Shown here: positions 18,785 to 29,087 of the stretch, piece after piece | Numbering within the stretch: position 1 is the stretch's first letter | Layout of the letters: every line of letters begins with the position of its first letter | NCBI GenBank assembly: GCA_900088475.1 | Contig: FLMG01000825.1 | Location: forward strand, 1 to 32,991 | Reading direction: 5' to 3' | DNA length: 32,991 nt | From: Hyphochytrium catenoides | Taxonomy: Eukaryota > Protista > Hyphochytriomycota | Translations under genes and position numbers: made by a program | Notes under the pieces: model-generated | What the model saw: only the letters and a program-made list of their open reading frames with translations | Databases searched by the model: none | What the model was told of the DNA's origin: nothing

Positions 18785-21700
18785 TCAATAGCCTGAATAA
18801 GGCTGGCAATAAGGGACCGTCGTCTCGTCCCATCGGCAGAAGTAGCCCTCCCATAACCTGCAGGGTCAGACGCGGCAAAGGGGGAGAGCAGACATATGGA
18901 GATGGTGGAACAGAGTGTAAGAAGGAGATTGTATGAACGGGAACCGTGGAGACACACGCTGATGCGCTAGGAACAACGGGCCCTTCAAGCGACCAGGATG
19001 AGAGAACCAAGAGCATCATACTAGAACGACGTGACTTAAGAGAAGATAAAGCAACGTTACGCCTCCAAGAAGGACAGCCCGCGTAGTAAAGTCACTAGCA
19101 AGACGTATGCAGTAAAGCCCTACCGTCCCGACGCCTGGAGGAGCAGATGAAGAGGAGATGATAGAGCCCAGGTTGCCTTACCTAATATTCTTGCTCATAA
19201 GGTTAGGGAAGAGCGGCACCCTGGACATCTTGTACTCGTTACTTAGAAAGGGTGTAAGGTCCCTAGACAGAAACGACCAAACTGACGGGGCCGGGCGCCC
19301 GTTTTGAGCTCTGAAAGGAAGAGGTTTGTCAACAAGATGCTCACAAGCAAGGTAGATAGGCCTATTCTCTAAGAGAAAGCAAGAGAAGGGCGGTGCTTGC
19401 CTAGATACTGTCGGCATGGAGAAGTGTAAAGAGCAAGACAGAAAGGGAGAGGGAGGAAGGAGGCTTAGAAGAGGAGAGCAGTCGGTGACAGACAAGGAGC
19501 AGCCATTCACCACGGAGTTCAGAAAAAAGCAATTGTTTACGCCAGTTCAGAGAAGAGGAACAAAAGGTAGGGGTGTGAATACGTTCGCAAGGACCTGAGA
19601 CGGCGCAACAGACGGCGCGACAGCCAGTAAGGTATCTATGGCATGAGGTTGGTGTCGATGCCCATGTGTCGGAAAGAAGAATAAACAAGCCAACGCTGGA
19701 CAACAACCTACCGGGCGAACTCCGAGTTGAAGACAAAAGTTCCGAACTTGCAGGCAAACGTCTGATCTGCGAGGAAGAGGAGGAGGCGCTCGGAAAACTG
19801 GAATAGATGGGGAAACTGACGCTGTATCTGCCATACGCAGTCCAAAAAGAGGAGGAAAACTGGCGAAAACTCGTCAGAGGAGGAGGAGGAAGAGCTTGAA
19901 GATGACGAGAAAGAGGAAGATGACGAGAGGTGTCCGCTGCGGAGAGCAAACTGATGGCCGAAGCTGCACCAATCTTTCTCTACTAGGACCTAAGAGTTCA
20001 AAAGGGTAGTGTTAGCGAGGTATGATAGACTGCACGTGATAGGAAGGAACAGGACAGATGGCTCTACCCAAAAGAGGACGACAGGTAGGTAGCAGAGTAG
20101 CAGATAGCAGGAGAAAAAGAAGAAAAAGAGAAGGGTCATTTATCTGAGACATACGTTTGACATCCAGATAGAACGTCAGAGAGAGGAAGAAGGACAGAGA
20201 GAGATTGAAAGAAAGACAGAGAGAGACCATGAATCCTTCAACCGTGCGATAGTACGGATCGAGCATCAATTGCGCGAGAGAAACCATTTGAGCGGTTCTG
20301 TCCCAGCCATCACTGCAGTGTGTAAGCACTGACTCGCCGCGAGTCTCTAAGAGATCAGCCACTGCCGACGATGCCACCAGAACCTGCGAAAAAATTGTTA
20401 GGATCACAAGCCTTCAATAGACGACAATGGGTAGCGTGCTCTCTGACTGGACACAGAAGACTGTCGAACTAGTTCTTGGACAATGAGGATGCCAATAATA
20501 TGCGAGGGAGATCAATATTGACGGGTCGCGAAAGAAAGCAGGAGGTATGCGATAGAGTTGGAGAACAAGGACTAGCGGGACCCTATATTCATGAACCTAC
20601 ATTCCTGACATGCTTCAGCCATCCCGTGGTGTGCACCCTTAGGTAGAAGTCCTCCTGATGTTGCGCTTGAGGCTGTTATAGAAAAGAAGGACGAGGGAAT
20701 AAGGTCCGCTTTAGATGGCGCCAGCTAGAAGGTCTGGAGCCATGGATAGCAAGGACTCTCACCTGAAAGAGGGCTGTTAAGCCCTTGAAACTCTCCCTTA
20801 GAGCATGGATGTTGTCAATATTCATAAACATTATTCGAGATCCGGGATAGTTGGAAGGCGTCTCTGTGCCCTTCCCCATGGCTCTGTTTCCCACTGACGC
20901 AAGCTGGCTGCGAGCTGCTCAAGAGACACCACCACACATAAGTCAAGAAGTAGGAGAAAAGGAGCACTCTACGGGGCTAAGGAAGGAGAAACAGAGACAG
21001 AGATAACGCCTCCCGTTTCCGCAGCTGAGCTCAGCGAACAAGCGGAGCCAAAGGTTCAGATTACGGCAGTGTGCGAGTATAGAAAGGGCAAGAAGCAAGG
21101 AGGTCCAGGGTCCACTTTTTCACACGTTTTTGTCATAAGGTTGCTAACTTCTAGTTTACGTACCGTCAACGATGGCAAATTCTTTTCCCATGTTCCCTGC
21201 AGCTTTGAGAGTGAAAAGTACCAGTTCTTCGTCCTCCGTGCGTCTCTGTCCCTTCACCCCTACAAGGGGCTGAGCACTGCGCGCCAGCACCGCACCAGTT
21301 CGGGGGTGAACCCAGACAGCAACGGGGAAACGACCCAAAGAGCGGAACGTGGCAGACCGCTGAAGGTGGTTGTCCGTTGCCTGTTAATGAGTAGAGGAAG
21401 AATCTAAGAGGACATTTATGGTTCCATTGGGTCCACAGTGAGATTTCATTCTCAAAATTTTAGAAGCCATAAGAGAAGATTGACTATGGACACTCCCGTA
21501 GACAAGTCTAGAGCAAACATAGAGGGTGACAGAAGAGATAAATAGCAGAAGATTTGTGCATCTGGCCGAAAAGCAACGGTAGGAAGCGGTCTAGCATACA
21601 TATGCAGGCACAACGATTCGCCTTGGATATGTTCTGCACAGTTCAAAGCGCTGATCAAAAATCCTCCAGGAATCAGAAGCAGGCGATAGGAAACCAAGCC

Positions 21701-24700
21701 GCTTGTACTCTTGCTGCATGTTGTATGCACCAACAGGGGAGAGCATTGGGTCTATACAGTGCAGTCACTTAGTTCGGCCAGCGAGAAGACGGACCACATG
21801 TTTCCCGAATGAGTGAGAGAGGGGCAATATTGCGGCACACATGAGCAGCAGCCGACCAAAGTCTTTAGAAGAGCATAAGTGAGGTGAAGAGAAAAGCCAC
21901 GAAAACATATATTAGAGGAGCAGTAAGGGGATATTAGACAAGAAGATAAGTATCATAATGTTATCCCCACCATCTGACCTAAATGCAGGACAAAGAGAGA
22001 CATATTCATAGAAAATGAAGAAACTGCGAGTCCAACCTGCGTAGGAGAAGCAAAAGAGATCCTCAACCCGAGAGGGAAACGCTAGCGCTGATAGGCAGAG
22101 GAAAAAGCGTTGGCAGTGCTCCTCAGAGAGAAATGAGACCACTTTATGCTGTCCATCTTTGCACTGAACAATTACTCTTCTCCCTCTGCCTCTTTCTTTG
22201 GAGAGTGATGAAGACAAGGATGAGGAGGAGAGTGATGAACTCACTGCAACGGGGGTATCGAGCTTTGATACCAACAAAAGAGGAAGGCTCCACCGCACGG
22301 AAGCAGAACCTGGCTGGTGGAATATGCAGCTATACCGTCAAATAAAAAGAGCAAGGTCAGTTCAATGACAGACTAGGACGCTAGCTATTACGTCAAATGT
22401 CGAGAGCGTTGGAGCGGAGGGGAGTAGGGATGTTAAGAAGCGCCTTTTTTACCTACCGCGCTCGCATCTGTCACGTTCAAGAAGAGAGAGAGAGAAAAAA
22501 GGATGCTCACCGGTAATTAGTTAGATAGAGTCGGCCCACACAGTTGGAGTTCCCACTATCGCCAGCTCCCCTTTGGAAGGACGTCCCTTCTACATCAGCG
22601 AAGAGAATCTCCCCTGGCAGTAGGAAGCGCTGGACATCAGCCACTGCGGTTGTGACCGAGGGAGAGAGAGATGAGAGAGGTAGCGATGGCGCATGTTCAA
22701 AGGCAAGATAGACGGGCCTGGGAATGCAGATTGGAGTGGGACGAATTAGAGAAAGACCTCCTCACCAACCTAACGCAGTTTCGTGGCTGTCTCCTCTAAA
22801 GTGTTCTAGTTGCTACATTAATCTTCTTCGGCCTTCTATCTTATCCATTCTTCTTTCGCTTGACTCTTCGTCCGTCTCGTCCAAGAGTCTCGCGACTCTT
22901 TGTCTATCCTGTTTTTGCCCAAGAAGATCACAGATCAGTCTTGACTTTACCTGCCTACTCGTTGGACTCTGCTGGCAAGTTCTTCAGTGGTCATCCCTCG
23001 AACACAGAGCCCATTAACGGCAATCAGGACGTCACCTAGTCGAATCTTCCCGCAAAGTTGGGCAGGGGGAGGGCCTCCGTCCTTCAAGGCGTTGAAGCCA
23101 CTAACAGTGACTGCTTGCAGCTGGGCCTCTATAGGCTCGCTACTTTGTTTGGTTGACTCCATAAGGGTAGCTTCTGCTAAGCCCTGCTGCTCTTTGTCCT
23201 GCCGCCCTTCCGAATTTGGCGGCACATTGCTCTTTGATTGTCTTAGAGAAAGCCCTAGAGAGGGTGCATCAAAGCGGACAACGTCTACGAGGGGGCTCTG
23301 GAAAGACAGCAAACAGTTCAAGTAAGTATGACAGAGAGCTCTTTCTTTTAACCAGACCAATGCATCTGCCGCCCTCGCCTTCTTTGCCTAACGGCCTTAG
23401 AGCAGTTGGACCATCTCTGAATCTGCATTTTATATAAGATGTACTCCATCGGACGGACGTTAGCTAGAGGTAGTGTCCTCGTAGTGCAAAGCATCGCAGT
23501 CGGTCCTCTCTTTCTATCATCTTTGTTCCTTACCTGTTGCCTTGTAGGGTCTCTAAGAATCTCCGCCTGATTGAGGATATCGTTAATGTTGGCAACTCCC
23601 GGTAGGTTCATTAACAACTGCAGACAACCTGCAGCATCTAAGCCCATCAGATCGTCTCTAATGCGGAGAAGGAGGGAAAGACAGAGATAAGGGAGCAGAG
23701 GAGGACCCGGGAAGGTCTTTTGGTCATCTTGAAACAGGCTCTCCTCTTGTTCAAGCGGCTGAAGGCTTCGAAATAGTGCAGACCAAATGTCAACCACCTG
23801 ATGAAGCTCGAACTCACGAATAAGAAGAAGGCGAAGCCTGATTGTCAAGGAATGTTGGCAGAAGACAGATGAGGGTGAGGATACCAGTAGATGTTTCGCC
23901 ATCCTACTCTGCATTGTCCTACCAGCGGTAGCAGTAGAGCTCTGGGTGCGCCCCGAGATGGTCCAGGTGAGCTTGAAGGTCCGGGTCTGCTCGCCTGAGG
24001 TAGACGGAGTGTAGAGCCCGACAAAACGCTATATTCGGATCCTTCCACTCACTCTCCTTCTCTTCGTTGGCCCCTCGTTGTCGTCCATCCTCTAGCTGCT
24101 GGTAGAAAGGAGCCATAAGGCTCATGAGCCTCTCGAAGAGCATAAAGGCGTCTTCCTCCAGATTCAGAGGGCATGAAAGCTCCTCCAGTAACTCTGTTCC
24201 TAGCAACGCAAGCCTAGGAATGACGAAGGTATGTCAAGGTCAAGAGGCCGCACTTTATCTCCTCAGCCAGGCAAACCCTACCGTTCGGTCTCAAGTGGGA
24301 GATCGCACCTCCATTCTTCCCGCTGACTCAAGACGTATACTAATACGCAGAGAAGGTCGTGCATGCCCTGGCGATAGGAAACCTCTGCCAGAGGAAGTCA
24401 ACGAGCGATGCACGAACGGAGGGTCAAGGATTAATGAAGAACCAAGAACCACTGAGAGAGGGCAAAGTGACATCAAATGGGCTAGACAAGACTAAGTGTG
24501 TGTGTGTGTGAGAGAGAGACAGAAGGAGAGGAACCAAGAGTGCGAGAACTAGTGAGAGAAGACAAACATTCTTGCAAACGCCCGCCATGCACCTGGATAG
24601 CTCTTAGCCCATACAAAGAGTACGTTTTTCATGAGCACCAGGAGCGCCGGCTTGTCCTGGAAAAAACTCTCTCCGCCTCTAGGAAACAATCGGTTCACGT

Positions 24701-25535
24701 CCTTCTCTATCTCTTCGCGCAGATGAGCGTCCTGCTAAACAGTAAGAAGTTCAGACGAGAGAGAAGCACATTGTAGAGAAGGAGGGGGCCGGGGATGAAG
24801 TCTGTCTGGAGGCTGAACAAGAGCAGTGCTGGAAGCTAAGCAGGAAGCCAGATCATAGTGAGGAGAAAGAAGACGTCACTACGGACCTCATGAGAGTCTG
24901 GAGCTTGAGACGTAGACTCTCTCTCATAAACAGCTCCATCTGTTCCCTCTATCGACAGTGGGGATGAGCGATCGCGTTAGCATTTGTCCTAGCTGGAGAC
25001 TGCAGGGTGAAAGAGGGTCCCTTCACCCTGCAGTGACATCCACGGAGGGCAGAATCGTATGTCTTTTATCTTTATGAACCTACCATCCTGGGGTATCATT
25101 GAGGCCCTGAGGCTGCGGTAGTACTCCCTCCTCGTCCTCACAGTCTCCAACCACTCTGTAGGCAGCGACGCAAGAGAGAACACGCCCAAGAAGGCTTTCC
25201 ATCCGACCTGCAGAGGAACTCCTTCCTCACCCCCACCTACTTTTGCTTCTTCTTCCATGGCAACTTGACCTTGACTCCTCTCTCACGGCCTCCATACCAT
25301 CGCCAGCATCTCTCGGAGTCCTGCAAATCTCGATATATTTTTACTCTTCAGCTCTATTACGAGTACTTCTGCACGGCTTGTTGTCAGCGAGAAGAGCTGT
25401 TATCTGTTGGACTAGACAGAGATGAGCGTAGGACTCTTGGCCGTCAGGCGGCATATCCTCCTGATGATGATGGCCAAGGTTGAAGCTGAAGACTCTCATG
25501 AAGATCGCCGCGAGGTTTGCCTCTTGCGAATCCAT
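18785..25535 (-). CDS. TBC (Rab-GAP)-PDZ-PH/GRAM-myotubularin phosphoinositide 3-phosphatase fusion protein (~1070 aa)
   Basis: Exons 25535-25494(?), 25396-25298(?), 25207-25084, 24948-24887, 24731-24593, 24384-24309, 24213-23923, 23837-23534, 23297-22951, 22717-22511, 22329-22037, 21751-21600, 21380-21164, 20914-20763, 20672-20601, 20383-20228, 19989-19712, 19310-19182, 18857-18785. All are GT-AG and frame-consistent. TBC: [34 protein letters not shown]: [24 protein letters not shown]: [14 protein letters not shown]. Myotubularin: [63 protein letters not shown]. The first two exons are tentative. Confidence 0.88.
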
Positions 25536-26090
25536 CTCTTCCTTCAACACGACATTTTAATTGTTCTTTTATCTCTTTGCTACATTTTCTCATTATTTCT
25601 CTCAAAGCAAAATCAAAAACCCTTTACGGAGTAGGGACATTATTATATAGTGTTTGCCAAGAGGGGATTTAAGAATGTATATATTAGATAATGGAATACT
25701 TTATGATTTTGATGCTAGTTTTTATGGGATTGTTGATGGTCTATATGGAGAGCAAGCAAGAGCTGGGCATGGCCAGGCCGTCTCAATAGCAGAAAGCTCA
25801 GTCTCCGCCTATCTGAAGCTTCTTGCCACTGTGGGACTTTAGGCCACAAGCTGCATTGTGGACAGAGGATAACAAGGAAGGCCTAGAGCTTCCCCCGCCG
25901 CGGCGCACGCTGGTCAGCCTCTGCCGGAGCCCTTTAGACTAAGTGCATTTGAACCGCCATGAGGGCGAGCTACAGATTGAGTGCTTGCTCGTAGAGAGTC
26001 TTCGGCGGCATCAAAGAGGGCAAGTACGGTTGTCTACCGGCTCATCCCAGGCACAAGGGCAAACCAATATTACGGCTCATCGCTACCGTC
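25536..26090. promoter_or_regulatory. Probable bidirectional promoter region (~555 bp) between head-to-head genes
   Basis: Divergent ATGs at 25535 (-, tentative) and 26091 (+). AT-rich block at about 25550-25745; TCTGAAGCT motif at 25812. Confidence 0.5.
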
Positions 26091-29087
26091 ATGGCAGAGG
26101 TTATTCTTGGCTGTGTTGGCAAGCCTTCCGCAGGCAAGAGCACATTCTTCAATGCGGTGACCGAAGGGAAGGCAAAAGTGGGCAACTTCCCGTTCACCAC
26201 CATTGAGCCGAACACTGGGATTTCCTACTATCGCACTGAATGTGCCTGCAAGAGCAGAGGACTAACAGCACAGTGCAAGCCAAAGTATGGGAAGTGCGAG
26301 GATGGCCTAAGGTAACTTGATGCTTACGTTCACGGCAGGGAGCGAGAGACTTGTCATGAAGCAGGAGCGAGTATGTGTACGGACATGTGAGGCACTTTTA
26401 AATGAGAGTGTCATGGAGCTTCCGAGGAGAGAGATGGAGAGACTGCCCACGATTTACCTAGATGGAGCGGACATGGCAACGGCTAAGAATGGATGTCTAA
26501 GAACTCTTAGCCGGTGATAGGCATGTCACATCCCTCATTGTTCCTTACGTTTGGAAGGAATTGCCGCTTCCGCCTCGCTCTTTGACTCTCTCTTTGTCTC
26601 TCAATTCTCTGACTCTTTCTCGGTCTCCTTCCCTGTGTCGAAAATGTTGGTCCTCCGCCCCTGTCTGGGTGCTCGCCTGCTCAATCACCTCAGGTACATT
26701 GCTATCAAGCTCCTCGATGTGGCCGGTTTGATCCCAGGAGCGTCGGAGGGCGCAGGCCTTGGAAATAAGTTCCTGGATGACCTGAGACACGCCAGTGTGC
26801 TGCTGCATATTATAGATGTTAGCGGGACAACCAATGAGAAGGGAGAGGTGGGTTGAGCTGTCTCTCTCCTGTTATGTTGTACTCCCGCTCTATGTCAACC
26901 TGCGTTCCCAACGTCTTGTGTCGATTGCTGGTCATACAAGTCGTCATGGTCTTCAGTCACATCGCCTGAGGTCTTTTCTATCTCCTCCATCTAGTTCTGT
27001 GGCGTCTGAGCTCTTCATCCGCCGCTTACGTTCTTCTTGGGGTTAGGTGACGGAGGGCTATGACCCCATCAATGACGCCGAGTGGCTCTGGTCTGAGATT
27101 CATGCGTGGGTCTTCAACAATCTTTGGAAGAAGTGGGACTCCATTGTGAGGAGGCACACAGGTAGGGCAGCCCATTGGTCTTTCTCGTCTAACCTCCTTG
27201 TGCTCTCTAGCTACTTCGCTGTCTATATGCATTGTTAACGTCTTGCGCGTGGCCGTTATTCTCATCTTTGTTATCAAGGCCCTCATCCGTACACCCATCT
27301 CACTCTACAATTCGGTCGTTTTTGCTACTTCTTGCTTGCTGTTATCTCTCGGCAGCTACCAAAGCAAGCGCTCTCGACACATTCTCTGCCCAGTTGTCAG
27401 GATACGGGTGTCCGCCCTCACTTATCGCTACCCTTTTGGATAAATTTGGGGCCAAAGAACCCGTTAACTTGCAGGTACCAGCCTGCCGGTTCTCCCTTTT
27501 ACACATCTTGGCTTCTTCTTTTGCCTTGCCTGCGCCTCACATCCCATCTTTGCCTTTCTCCTCGTCAATTGCTATAATTCTCTCCAGGAGTGGACAGAAG
27601 ATGATGTTCGTAGGCTCGTCTCTCTTTTCCTGGAGGTTCGCTTTCCTACGGTCTTAGTTCTTAACAAAAGTGACCAGGGAGGGGATACCGATAAAAACAT
27701 CAGGTGAGCAGGAAAGAGCCTAGCATAGCGGGACTGGTCAATGATAGGGTAAGGGCCCAGTAGGTTATAAACAAGATGAAGGGTCTGGAGAGTGACGGTC
27801 TCGGGGAAGGACTATTCAGCCAAAGAAAGAGGGCATTCGCCTTCCCTACACGGATTTGACCGAGTTTGTCATCAGCCATATGGTAGAGAAGTATGGCGAC
27901 GAGCGCTGTATTGTCTCTTCTGCTGCTGCTGAGGTGATGCTCAAGACAGCAGAGAAGCAGCGAAGGATCAGATATAGACCAGGAGACATGTTCTTCACCT
28001 CGTACGAGGAGGAAGAGGAGGAGAAGGTTAGGAATGGCTACTTTGGCAGTCAAACCACTGCTTAAACGCCCCATTTCATCTCTCGTCTGATTACACTCTA
28101 TCGAACTTTCTCACGCCGTCTCTCTTCGTTCAACCCTTCTGTGCACCTTTGCCAACTGTGCAACCTCTCCACGCTCATCATCTGCGCTCGCTTTCAGGCT
28201 GAGACCCTGGCAAGAGGAGAGGAGTTCAAGCCACCTGGGCCACCACTTATTCCCTCTGAAAAAAAAATCACAAAGCGGCTAGAAAAGTTGAAGGACATGG
28301 TTCTCTATAGATTTGGAAGCACTGGTATGGCAGACTGCAGTTTCCTAGGCTCACATGATTTCTACTGTTAAGTGATTGCATGCCTCTCAGCCTAAGCAAA
28401 TATGCATTATCGTCCGTCTAGGGATCACGATGTGTCCTTCCATGCGAGGTTGCAGCACTTTTGGTCCGCTGCCTGTTACCTCATGTCCCGTTCATCTGGT
28501 CTCCCATCCTCATGTTCTTCTGTCTCTCTGCAGGTGTATGGCAGGCTTTGGAGGCGGCGGTGAAGCTGACTGGGACTGTGGTTGTATACCCAGTCCGATC
28601 TCTTAAGACCTTTGCCACGGAGCCCCAAGGAAAGGGAGTCTTTGGGAACGCGATTCTTGTCAAAAAAGGTAAGAAATCAAAGACATGCCTACAAATTGTG
28701 ATAGGAGGACGGCGGGAGATTCGGCCACATGCATTCTTGGGCTTGGTACATCTTCACTTTGGTTGACAGAGTTATGTTGGGGCTGTCTCTGTTACTGAAC
28801 GTCCGCTTTTTCTCATCTACTGTTGGTTATCCTTCGCTTTTGTGTTATGAGCATTCTGAGGGAATCATCTTGGTTACCTTGTTAGCCTTCTCCCTCTTCC
28901 CTGTTTGCCAGGTACAACTGTACGGGAGTTAGCCTATCTGGTCGACCCTGCAATAGGTCTGAACTTTCATTATGCCGAGGGGGAGGATGGCCGACGACTG
29001 AGCGAAGAGGAGGAAGTGTGGCACAACATGATCATCAAGTTTTCCACGATAGCAACACAAGGTCATAGCCACTCTTCGTTCTCTTAG
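26091..29087 (+). CDS. Obg-family GTPase, Ygr210/archaeal YchF-like subfamily, with C-terminal TGS-like domain (~437 aa)
   Basis: Exons 26091-26311, 26694-26847, 27047-27161, 27356-27474, 27588-27703, 27876-28026, 28198-28324, 28534-28668, 28912-29087, phase-consistent. G1 GKPSAGKS, G2 [11 protein letters not shown]3 [21 protein letters not shown]4 NKSD, G5 [19 protein letters not shown]. Has the Cys-rich insert CAC..C..GKC typical of this subfamily. Confidence 0.92.

Follow-up and report, generated by a model that had tools for sequence, protein, structure and literature searches.

Introduction

TBC1D5 is the Rab7 GTPase-activating protein (GAP) that acts on retromer in animals and fungi, and active myotubularins are 3-phosphatases that act on phosphatidylinositol 3-phosphate (PI3P) and phosphatidylinositol 3,5-bisphosphate (PI(3,5)P2). 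In animals, Rab7 inactivation and PI3P removal are performed by separate proteins. A Rab regulator and a myotubularin are found in one chain in MTMR5/MTMR13 (Sbf1/2), which combine a DENN-type Rab guanine nucleotide exchange factor (GEF) with a dead myotubularin, and the animal myotubularins MTM1, MTMR1 and MTMR2 end in PDZ-binding motifs. Here, we describe a gene on contig FLMG01000825.1 of Hyphochytrium catenoides (assembly GCA_900088475.1; positions 1 to 32,991, hereafter the window). It is likely that this gene encodes a single protein of 1041 residues in which a TBC1D5-type TBC domain is followed by PDZ and PH-GRAM domains and by a myotubularin predicted to be competent, that this protein belongs to a conserved family, and that the two enzymes of the family would jointly erase the Rab and lipid marks of endosomes.

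Gene Structure and Splice Junctions

The gene lies on the minus strand in an intron-rich, eukaryotic locus, and its coding region (18785..25258) extends from an ATG at 25258 to a stop codon at 18787-18785. In the spliced model, 17 exons are joined without internal stops: exons 1-6 at 25258-25084, 24948-24887, 24734-24593, 24384-24309, 24213-23923 and 23837-23534; exons 7-12 at 23297-22951, 22717-22511, 22329-22037, 21751-21600, 21380-21164 and 20914-20763; and exons 13-17 at 20672-20601, 20383-20228, 19989-19712, 19310-19182 and 18857-18785. All 16 introns begin with GT, end with AG and measure 85-401 nt. Exon 2 is small, and its limits are uncertain by a few codons. Against full-length oomycete proteins, the predicted product gives one collinear BLASTP alignment that covers residues 20-1041 at approximately 37% identity (35-38%), and the profile of the family scores 918 bits against it and runs unbroken through the TBC/PDZ junction. 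The sole break in the alignment is a 31-residue insert in a PDZ loop, which coincides with no exon junction.

Two of the junctions connect the domains whose union is in question. At the first, between TBC and PDZ, the donor CAG/GTAAGG (exon end at 23534; the slash marks the splice site) and the acceptor TTCCAG/AGC (exon start at 23297) are joined in phase 0, and the window sequence from LRDPTRQQ/ onward aligns residue for residue with ...LHNPMLEASKDVDVVKF..SLGLVL. At the second, between PDZ and PH-GRAM, GCAG/GTAAAG (22951) and CCCAG/G (22717) are joined in phase 2 to give VGR/PVYLAF, and VGR/PVYLAFEH of the window pairs residue for residue with VGKPLFIAFAH in relatives. The 23534/23297 and 22951/22717 junctions are therefore both supported by the relatives. 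In addition, the exon that carries most of the PDZ domain (exon 7) has no in-frame ATG upstream of the first PDZ strand; its frame, if left unspliced, meets a stop codon immediately after the exon end, and the final strand of the domain is encoded by exon 8. The original prediction, made from the DNA letters alone, had proposed one polypeptide with the order TBC, PDZ, PH-GRAM and myotubularin and had stated that these two junctions keep the frame; the spliced model and the collinear relatives bear out both proposals.

Haplotype variation also bears on the model. The contigs of three DNA runs reproduce the window sequence, and one run contains a second haplotype that differs within the gene by 31 substitutions and 7 indels. 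The predicted introns hold 29 of these 31 substitutions and all seven indels, with exons making up 53% of the span, and the two exonic changes are a synonymous one and G157E. As the variants are clustered, this intron-biased placement backs the exon model as supportive evidence and not as a formal test; none of the variants falls in intron 6. At position 24736, the second haplotype (DNA run X2) alters the A of the AG acceptor of exon 3. This acceptor has a NAGNAG arrangement, in which the first AG is followed by another one 3 nt further on; use of the latter would keep the frame at the cost of one Gln. A similar NAGNAG pair is found at the acceptor of exon 12 (20917/20914).

Relatives and Phylogenetic Placement

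The last large myotubularin exon was used as a query against 1.84 billion representative proteins; the window's own protein was not found among them, and the best match to one window exon was 66% identical. The search with this exon also recovered five cluster representatives that contain TBC and PDZ domains too. A full-length search from one representative yielded more than 40 full-length oomycete proteins with both RabGAP-TBC (PF00566) and Myotub-related (PF06602) domains, from Phytophthora, Pythium, Globisporangium, Lagenidium, Peronospora, Bremia, Plasmopara, Hyaloperonospora, Saprolegnia, Achlya and Aphanomyces. A cluster of 67 members in the Atlas has an equal domain make-up, and metagenomes add two or more deep lineages with the fusion. 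The entire fusion is encoded by a single uninterrupted open reading frame (ORF) in two metagenome organisms (L002 2935-6042 and L003 1001-4138), and one ORF of Saprolegnia parasitica covers the TBC, PDZ and GRAM domains together with the larger part of the phosphatase. The latter of the two metagenome ORFs represents a GC-rich lineage (P0130/P0202) that keeps the TBC-PDZ-GRAM-myotubularin order.

In a quick tree, P0060, Saprolegniales and Peronosporales form a group with good support from which the window protein and P0130 are excluded, a placement that is only indicative, the tree being unrooted and its branches long. Some Phytophthora entries of 1479-1559 residues (P0164, P0166, P0169, P0172 and P0173) carry appended glycosyltransferase domains (PF00534, PF13439 and others) and are named alpha-1,3-mannosyltransferase. 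These long models are probably mergers of neighboring genes, because other Phytophthora entries, of approximately 1085 residues, end at a conserved Tyr.

TBC Domain and the VPS29-Binding Motif

The TBC RabGAP domain (23534..25258 on the minus strand) is encoded by exons 1-6 and comprises residues 1-350. Pfam RabGAP-TBC matches the exon pieces 24734-24552 and 24233-23922 with 20.7 and 19.9 bits, each of which is under the cut-off of 25.2 bits since the pieces are fragments, and the family profile of the TBC part scores 212 bits against the window protein. The Arg finger reads IEKDVNR (24710-24690; residues 88-94) and the Gln finger YRQ (24376-24368; residues 130-132). Both align with those of TBC1D5 orthologues and of family members, and both are kept exactly in the window protein, in P0060 and in every oomycete member of the alignments. 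The best non-fusion matches of the TBC part, in Mytilus, Mortierella, Geosmithia and Brachionus (molluscs, rotifers and fungi), are named TBC1D5. A TBC1D5-like character of this part, judged by the names of its closest stand-alone relatives, is thus supported; a sequence search of the PDB, in which no TBC1D5 TBC domain is present, did not settle the subfamily.

Most family members share a second feature with TBC1D5. Just ahead of the Arg finger, they contain a motif, [DH]PL[ST]...W.Q[FY]F, that aligns with NNPLS..SPWNRFF of TBC1D5 orthologues. This segment is Ins1, which among human TBC proteins is unique to TBC1D5 and in which N140-P141-L142 and W150 bind VPS29 (PMC5105194); the VPS29-binding motif is kept across eukaryotes as NPL, HPL or DPL (PMC7539009). 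The oomycete members and P0060 contain the HPL/DPL form, and P0130 does not. The TBC1D5-like nature that had been suggested for the TBC part is accordingly upheld by the best non-fusion matches and by the Ins1-type motif of the family, which the window protein itself does not contain.

Two candidates for such a motif at the window locus were considered and rejected. If exon 1 is extended to 25028 and joined to exon 3, a Trp is placed at the spacing found in TBC1D5, but a non-GT donor is required; moreover, the three DNA runs contain no indel in the GGG run, and the extension brings no gain in score over the canonical model. In intron 1 (25022-24927, minus strand), an out-of-frame stretch reads RDPLS, 23 residues, WSCL and a stop codon, and resembles the DPL...W segment that binds VPS29. 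No canonical splice path uses this ORF convincingly as the missing motif, and the stretch could be a product of chance, a relic of an ancestral exon or an alternative exon.

PDZ Domain

The PDZ domain (22696..23297, minus strand) is encoded by exon 7 and the first codons of exon 8, so that intron 7 (22950-22718) lies within it. On the piece 23297-22950, Pfam PDZ_6 just reaches its cut-off with 27.0 bits, and PDZ scores 20.0 bits, while the family profile of the PDZ part scores 53 bits against the window protein. The binding loop of GLGF type reads SLGLSL, and the last strand is VYLAF; in a structure model of a homologue (see below), strand 399-404, RPLIMSF, corresponds to RPVYLAF of the window. 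The 31-residue insert mentioned above is hydrophilic, occupies the loop between strands beta2 and beta3 (approximately 23213-23121, minus strand) and is absent in all relatives examined. The insert is not a missed intron, as no in-frame GT...AG pair is available.

PH-GRAM, Phosphatase and C-Terminal Tail

Exons 8-9 encode the PH-GRAM domain (22037..22717, minus strand), which is marked by the motifs LLPGE and LYLTNYR and contains a serine-rich loop. The Pfam GRAM models gave no match on the exon pieces; the family profile covers the domain in one stretch, at residues 498-1033. The myotubularin phosphatase (18785..21751, minus strand) is encoded by exons 10-17. Pfam Myotub-related matches six exon pieces from 21764 to 19711 with E-values of 7.6e-08 to 2e-32, among them the piece that bears the CX5R loop (20389-20228; E 2.7e-22). 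This loop, HCSDGWDR, is found at 20320-20297 (HCSDGWDRT being residues 852-860), and CSDGWDR is invariant across 34 family members. The phosphatase is therefore predicted to be catalytically competent. Both enzymes had been considered intact when the gene was first noted, and this view holds: IEKDVNR, YRQ and HCSDGWDR are all present and aligned with the family.

The protein ends with a tail of 13 residues (18788..18826, minus strand) whose length and final Tyr are conserved in the family. The final Tyr lies approximately 13 residues past the motif LW.GYFCR[WF]D in the window protein, in P0060, in P0130 and in those oomycete proteins that reach the tail; three Aphanomyces proteins alone append a final S after it. 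As the tail is conserved to its last residue, and because MTM1, MTMR1 and MTMR2 of animals have PDZ-binding C-termini, there is a possibility, by analogy, that the built-in PDZ domain binds the protein's own C-terminal tail. Use of the PDZ domain as a targeting module, as proposed in the original prediction, may be one option only. In AlphaFold monomer models of two homologues, the tail has a predicted local distance difference test (pLDDT) score below 50, which gives no support for docking of the tail to the PDZ domain.

The domain assignments can also be compared with solved structures. The phosphatase half of a homologue has MTMR2 and MTMR1 as its closest solved relatives (E 2.5e-99). An AlphaFold model of a Saprolegnia homologue, built from 34 sequences (overall pLDDT 74), matches the PH-GRAM and phosphatase domains of MTMR2 with a template modeling (TM) score of 0.83 over approximately 540 aligned columns and the all-helical TBC domains of TBC1D22A and Gyp1 with TM scores of 0.62-0.69. 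Its PDZ domain is modeled at a pLDDT of 83-92 and matches the fold of known PDZ domains (six strands, two helices) at TM scores of 0.74-0.75, with PDZ3 of INADL at 0.75.

Proposed Function and Alternative Explanations

Because TBC1D5 is the Rab7 GAP of retromer and active myotubularins are 3-phosphatases of PI3P and PI(3,5)P2, we propose that the TBC part of the fusion would switch off Rab7 and that, on the endosomal membrane where this occurs, the phosphatase would take the 3-phosphate off PI3P/PI(3,5)P2. One enzyme would thereby erase both of the marks by which retromer and other Rab7/PI3P effectors are kept on the membrane, and those effectors that need both marks would be released. The VPS29-docking motif in most members would suggest that the family acts on endosomes coated with retromer, and as the window protein does not have this motif, its own targeting may rest on PH-GRAM and PDZ.

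A more elaborate joint reading can be drawn from the same features. The family may act as a retromer-docked coat-removal enzyme, which would be held by HPL/DPL-VPS29 contacts, switch Rab7 off and remove the PI3P used by SNX-type partners, with the PDZ domain capturing the protein's own Tyr tail; capture in cis would form an autoinhibitory latch, and capture in trans a head-to-tail dimer. We regard this full combination as speculative and rather doubtful. If it were true, the capture of the tail would internalize the relation between PDZ domain and ligand that animal MTM1 and MTMR2 have with separate PDZ proteins.

Several points weigh against a single protein with dual erasure as its function. 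The splice between 23534 and 23297 is, in H. catenoides, a prediction from the sequence and from relatives; retention of intron 6 would open 61 codons up to a stop codon at 23350-23348, and the composition of this intron is exon-like. No VPS29-type PL motif is found in the window protein in any of the 1958 canonical splice paths of the first three exons. The P0130 lineage is without both TBC fingers, which implies that GAP activity is not essential family-wide. Lastly, we infer the Rab7 and PI3P activities, and their joint action, from family membership.

The P0130/P0202 lineage is also the starting point of a first alternative, namely that the fusion is mainly a PI3P phosphatase, in which the TBC domain is a module for binding or targeting to Rab or retromer and not a working GAP. 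This lineage keeps the architecture and an intact phosphatase site, whereas its Arg finger is lost and YRR replaces YRQ; in addition, the VPS29-docking motif kept by the family is a targeting element. However, the exact fingers in the window protein, in P0060 and in all aligned oomycete members argue for selection on catalysis, and we consider it unlikely that the TBC domain is a mere adaptor. An equally improbable alternative is that the target of the TBC domain is not Rab7 but another Rab, in which case the fusion would serve, for example, the maturation of autophagosomes or phagosomes instead of retromer endosomes. The substrate specificity of a TBC domain cannot be read from its sequence, animal TBC1D5 has autophagy roles too, and the window protein has no PL motif, all of which would suit this explanation, but orthology with TBC1D5 and the conservation of the VPS29 motif in most members favor Rab7 and retromer.

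The remaining alternative concerns intron 6 (23298..23533, minus strand). In place of the fusion, or beside it, the locus might give rise to two products: a protein with the TBC domain only, by retention of intron 6, and a PDZ-myotubularin protein from an internal promoter and a small first exon within that intron. On the sense strand, introns 6 and 7, between which the PDZ exon lies, are rich in purines and in A, with pyrimidine fractions of 0.44 and 0.39; pyrimidines predominate in most of the gene's other introns (approximately 0.6-0.73). In a crude codon test, the intron-6 read-through scores like an exon (0.216 bits per codon, compared with values of about -0.07 to -0.7 in other introns), and intron 6 contains an ATG with a GTCCGT donor after it that could in principle splice in frame to 23297. 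This explanation is the least probable of the three, and two separate products are unlikely as the sole output, because the fusion is conserved: the fused order occupies one uninterrupted ORF in three other organisms (in Saprolegnia, the greater part of it does), the alignment with relatives crosses the position of the intron directly, without gaps and with a linker of similar length, the donor and acceptor of the intron are strong and among the best of the gene, and the codon test, besides being circular, responds mostly to purine content.

We therefore retain a single protein that would clear both marks as the preferred reading. The conservation of the fusion in oomycetes and deeper relatives offers a Rosetta-stone argument that Rab7 inactivation of TBC1D5 type and PI3P removal by a myotubularin would constitute one functional step. 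The fusion would also provide a simple system for studying joint clearance of endosomal Rab and lipid marks, and genome-editing tools exist already for Phytophthora sojae and other oomycetes.

Start Codon and the 5′ Region

The coding start is most likely the ATG at 25258 and not position 25535. The original prediction had included an additional 5′ exon at 25345..25535 (minus strand) in the coding sequence, which is probably not correct. By sequence inspection, this segment has no in-frame join to the TBC exon at canonical sites, and relatives start only 10-25 residues ahead of the first TBC motif, with no matching N-terminal extension. The second haplotype contains four substitutions upstream of 25258 and 1-base indels at 25437 (a deletion inside the segment) and at 25555 (just upstream of it). 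The indels and the short N-termini of relatives, taken together, make it unlikely that 25535-25345 is coding, and the segment is probably 5′ untranslated region or otherwise non-coding.

Approximately 830 bp from the ATG at 25258, a divergent plus-strand ORF (26091-26315) opens with a P-loop GTPase motif (GKPSAGKST...FPFTTIEPN) that is typical of Obg/YchF-like ATPases.

Comparison with Known Systems

TBC1D5 and the window protein belong to the same TBC subfamily and share the dual Arg and Gln fingers, and the N/H/D-P-L...W segment of Ins1 is kept by most members of the fusion family, although not by the window protein. On the other hand, TBC1D5 continues after its TBC domain with a long disordered tail and has no PDZ-GRAM-phosphatase part. 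The likeness to MTM1, MTMR1 and MTMR2 lies in the PH-GRAM domain and the phosphatase with its CSDGWDR loop; by contrast, the window protein lacks the C-terminal coiled coil of these proteins and ends 13 residues past the catalytic domain. With MTMR5/MTMR13, it has in common that a Rab regulator and a myotubularin are placed in one chain, but the logic is the opposite: a GAP in place of a GEF, and a phosphatase that is predicted to be live instead of dead. No DENN match was found in Pfam scans of the window exon pieces or of the homologues, and the label "SET-binding factor 2" that some oomycete entries bear is an automatic misnomer.

The fusion is not mentioned in surveys of myotubularins and TBC proteins, in an oomycete phosphatome paper or in papers on the evolution of TBC1D5 and VPS29. 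The earlier claim of novelty therefore stands in so far as no paper describing the fusion was found, but not for the architecture itself, which public proteomes already contain under names that are generic or wrong, and the accompanying guess that unstudied homologues exist in stramenopiles proved correct, given the more than 40 oomycete proteins and the deep metagenome lineages. Oomycete entries are labeled "Phosphatidylinositol-3-phosphatase," "Myotubularin-related protein 2" or "SET-binding factor 2"; examples are SPRG_16905 of Saprolegnia parasitica and entries of Phytophthora nicotianae, P. cactorum and Pythium oligandrum (P0189, P0161, P0162 and P0158). Recognition of the family corrects misleading automatic names such as "SET-binding factor 2" and "alpha-1,3-mannosyltransferase." The oomycete proteins and the window protein are alike in domain order, catalytic motifs and the tail ending in Tyr, whereas the window gene differs in its 16 introns, its 31-residue PDZ insert, the lack of an HPL/DPL motif and its branching, in the quick tree, outside the Saprolegniales and Peronosporales clades. 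The window gene is a divergent new member of an existing, uncharacterized family that is conserved in oomycetes and related deep lineages.

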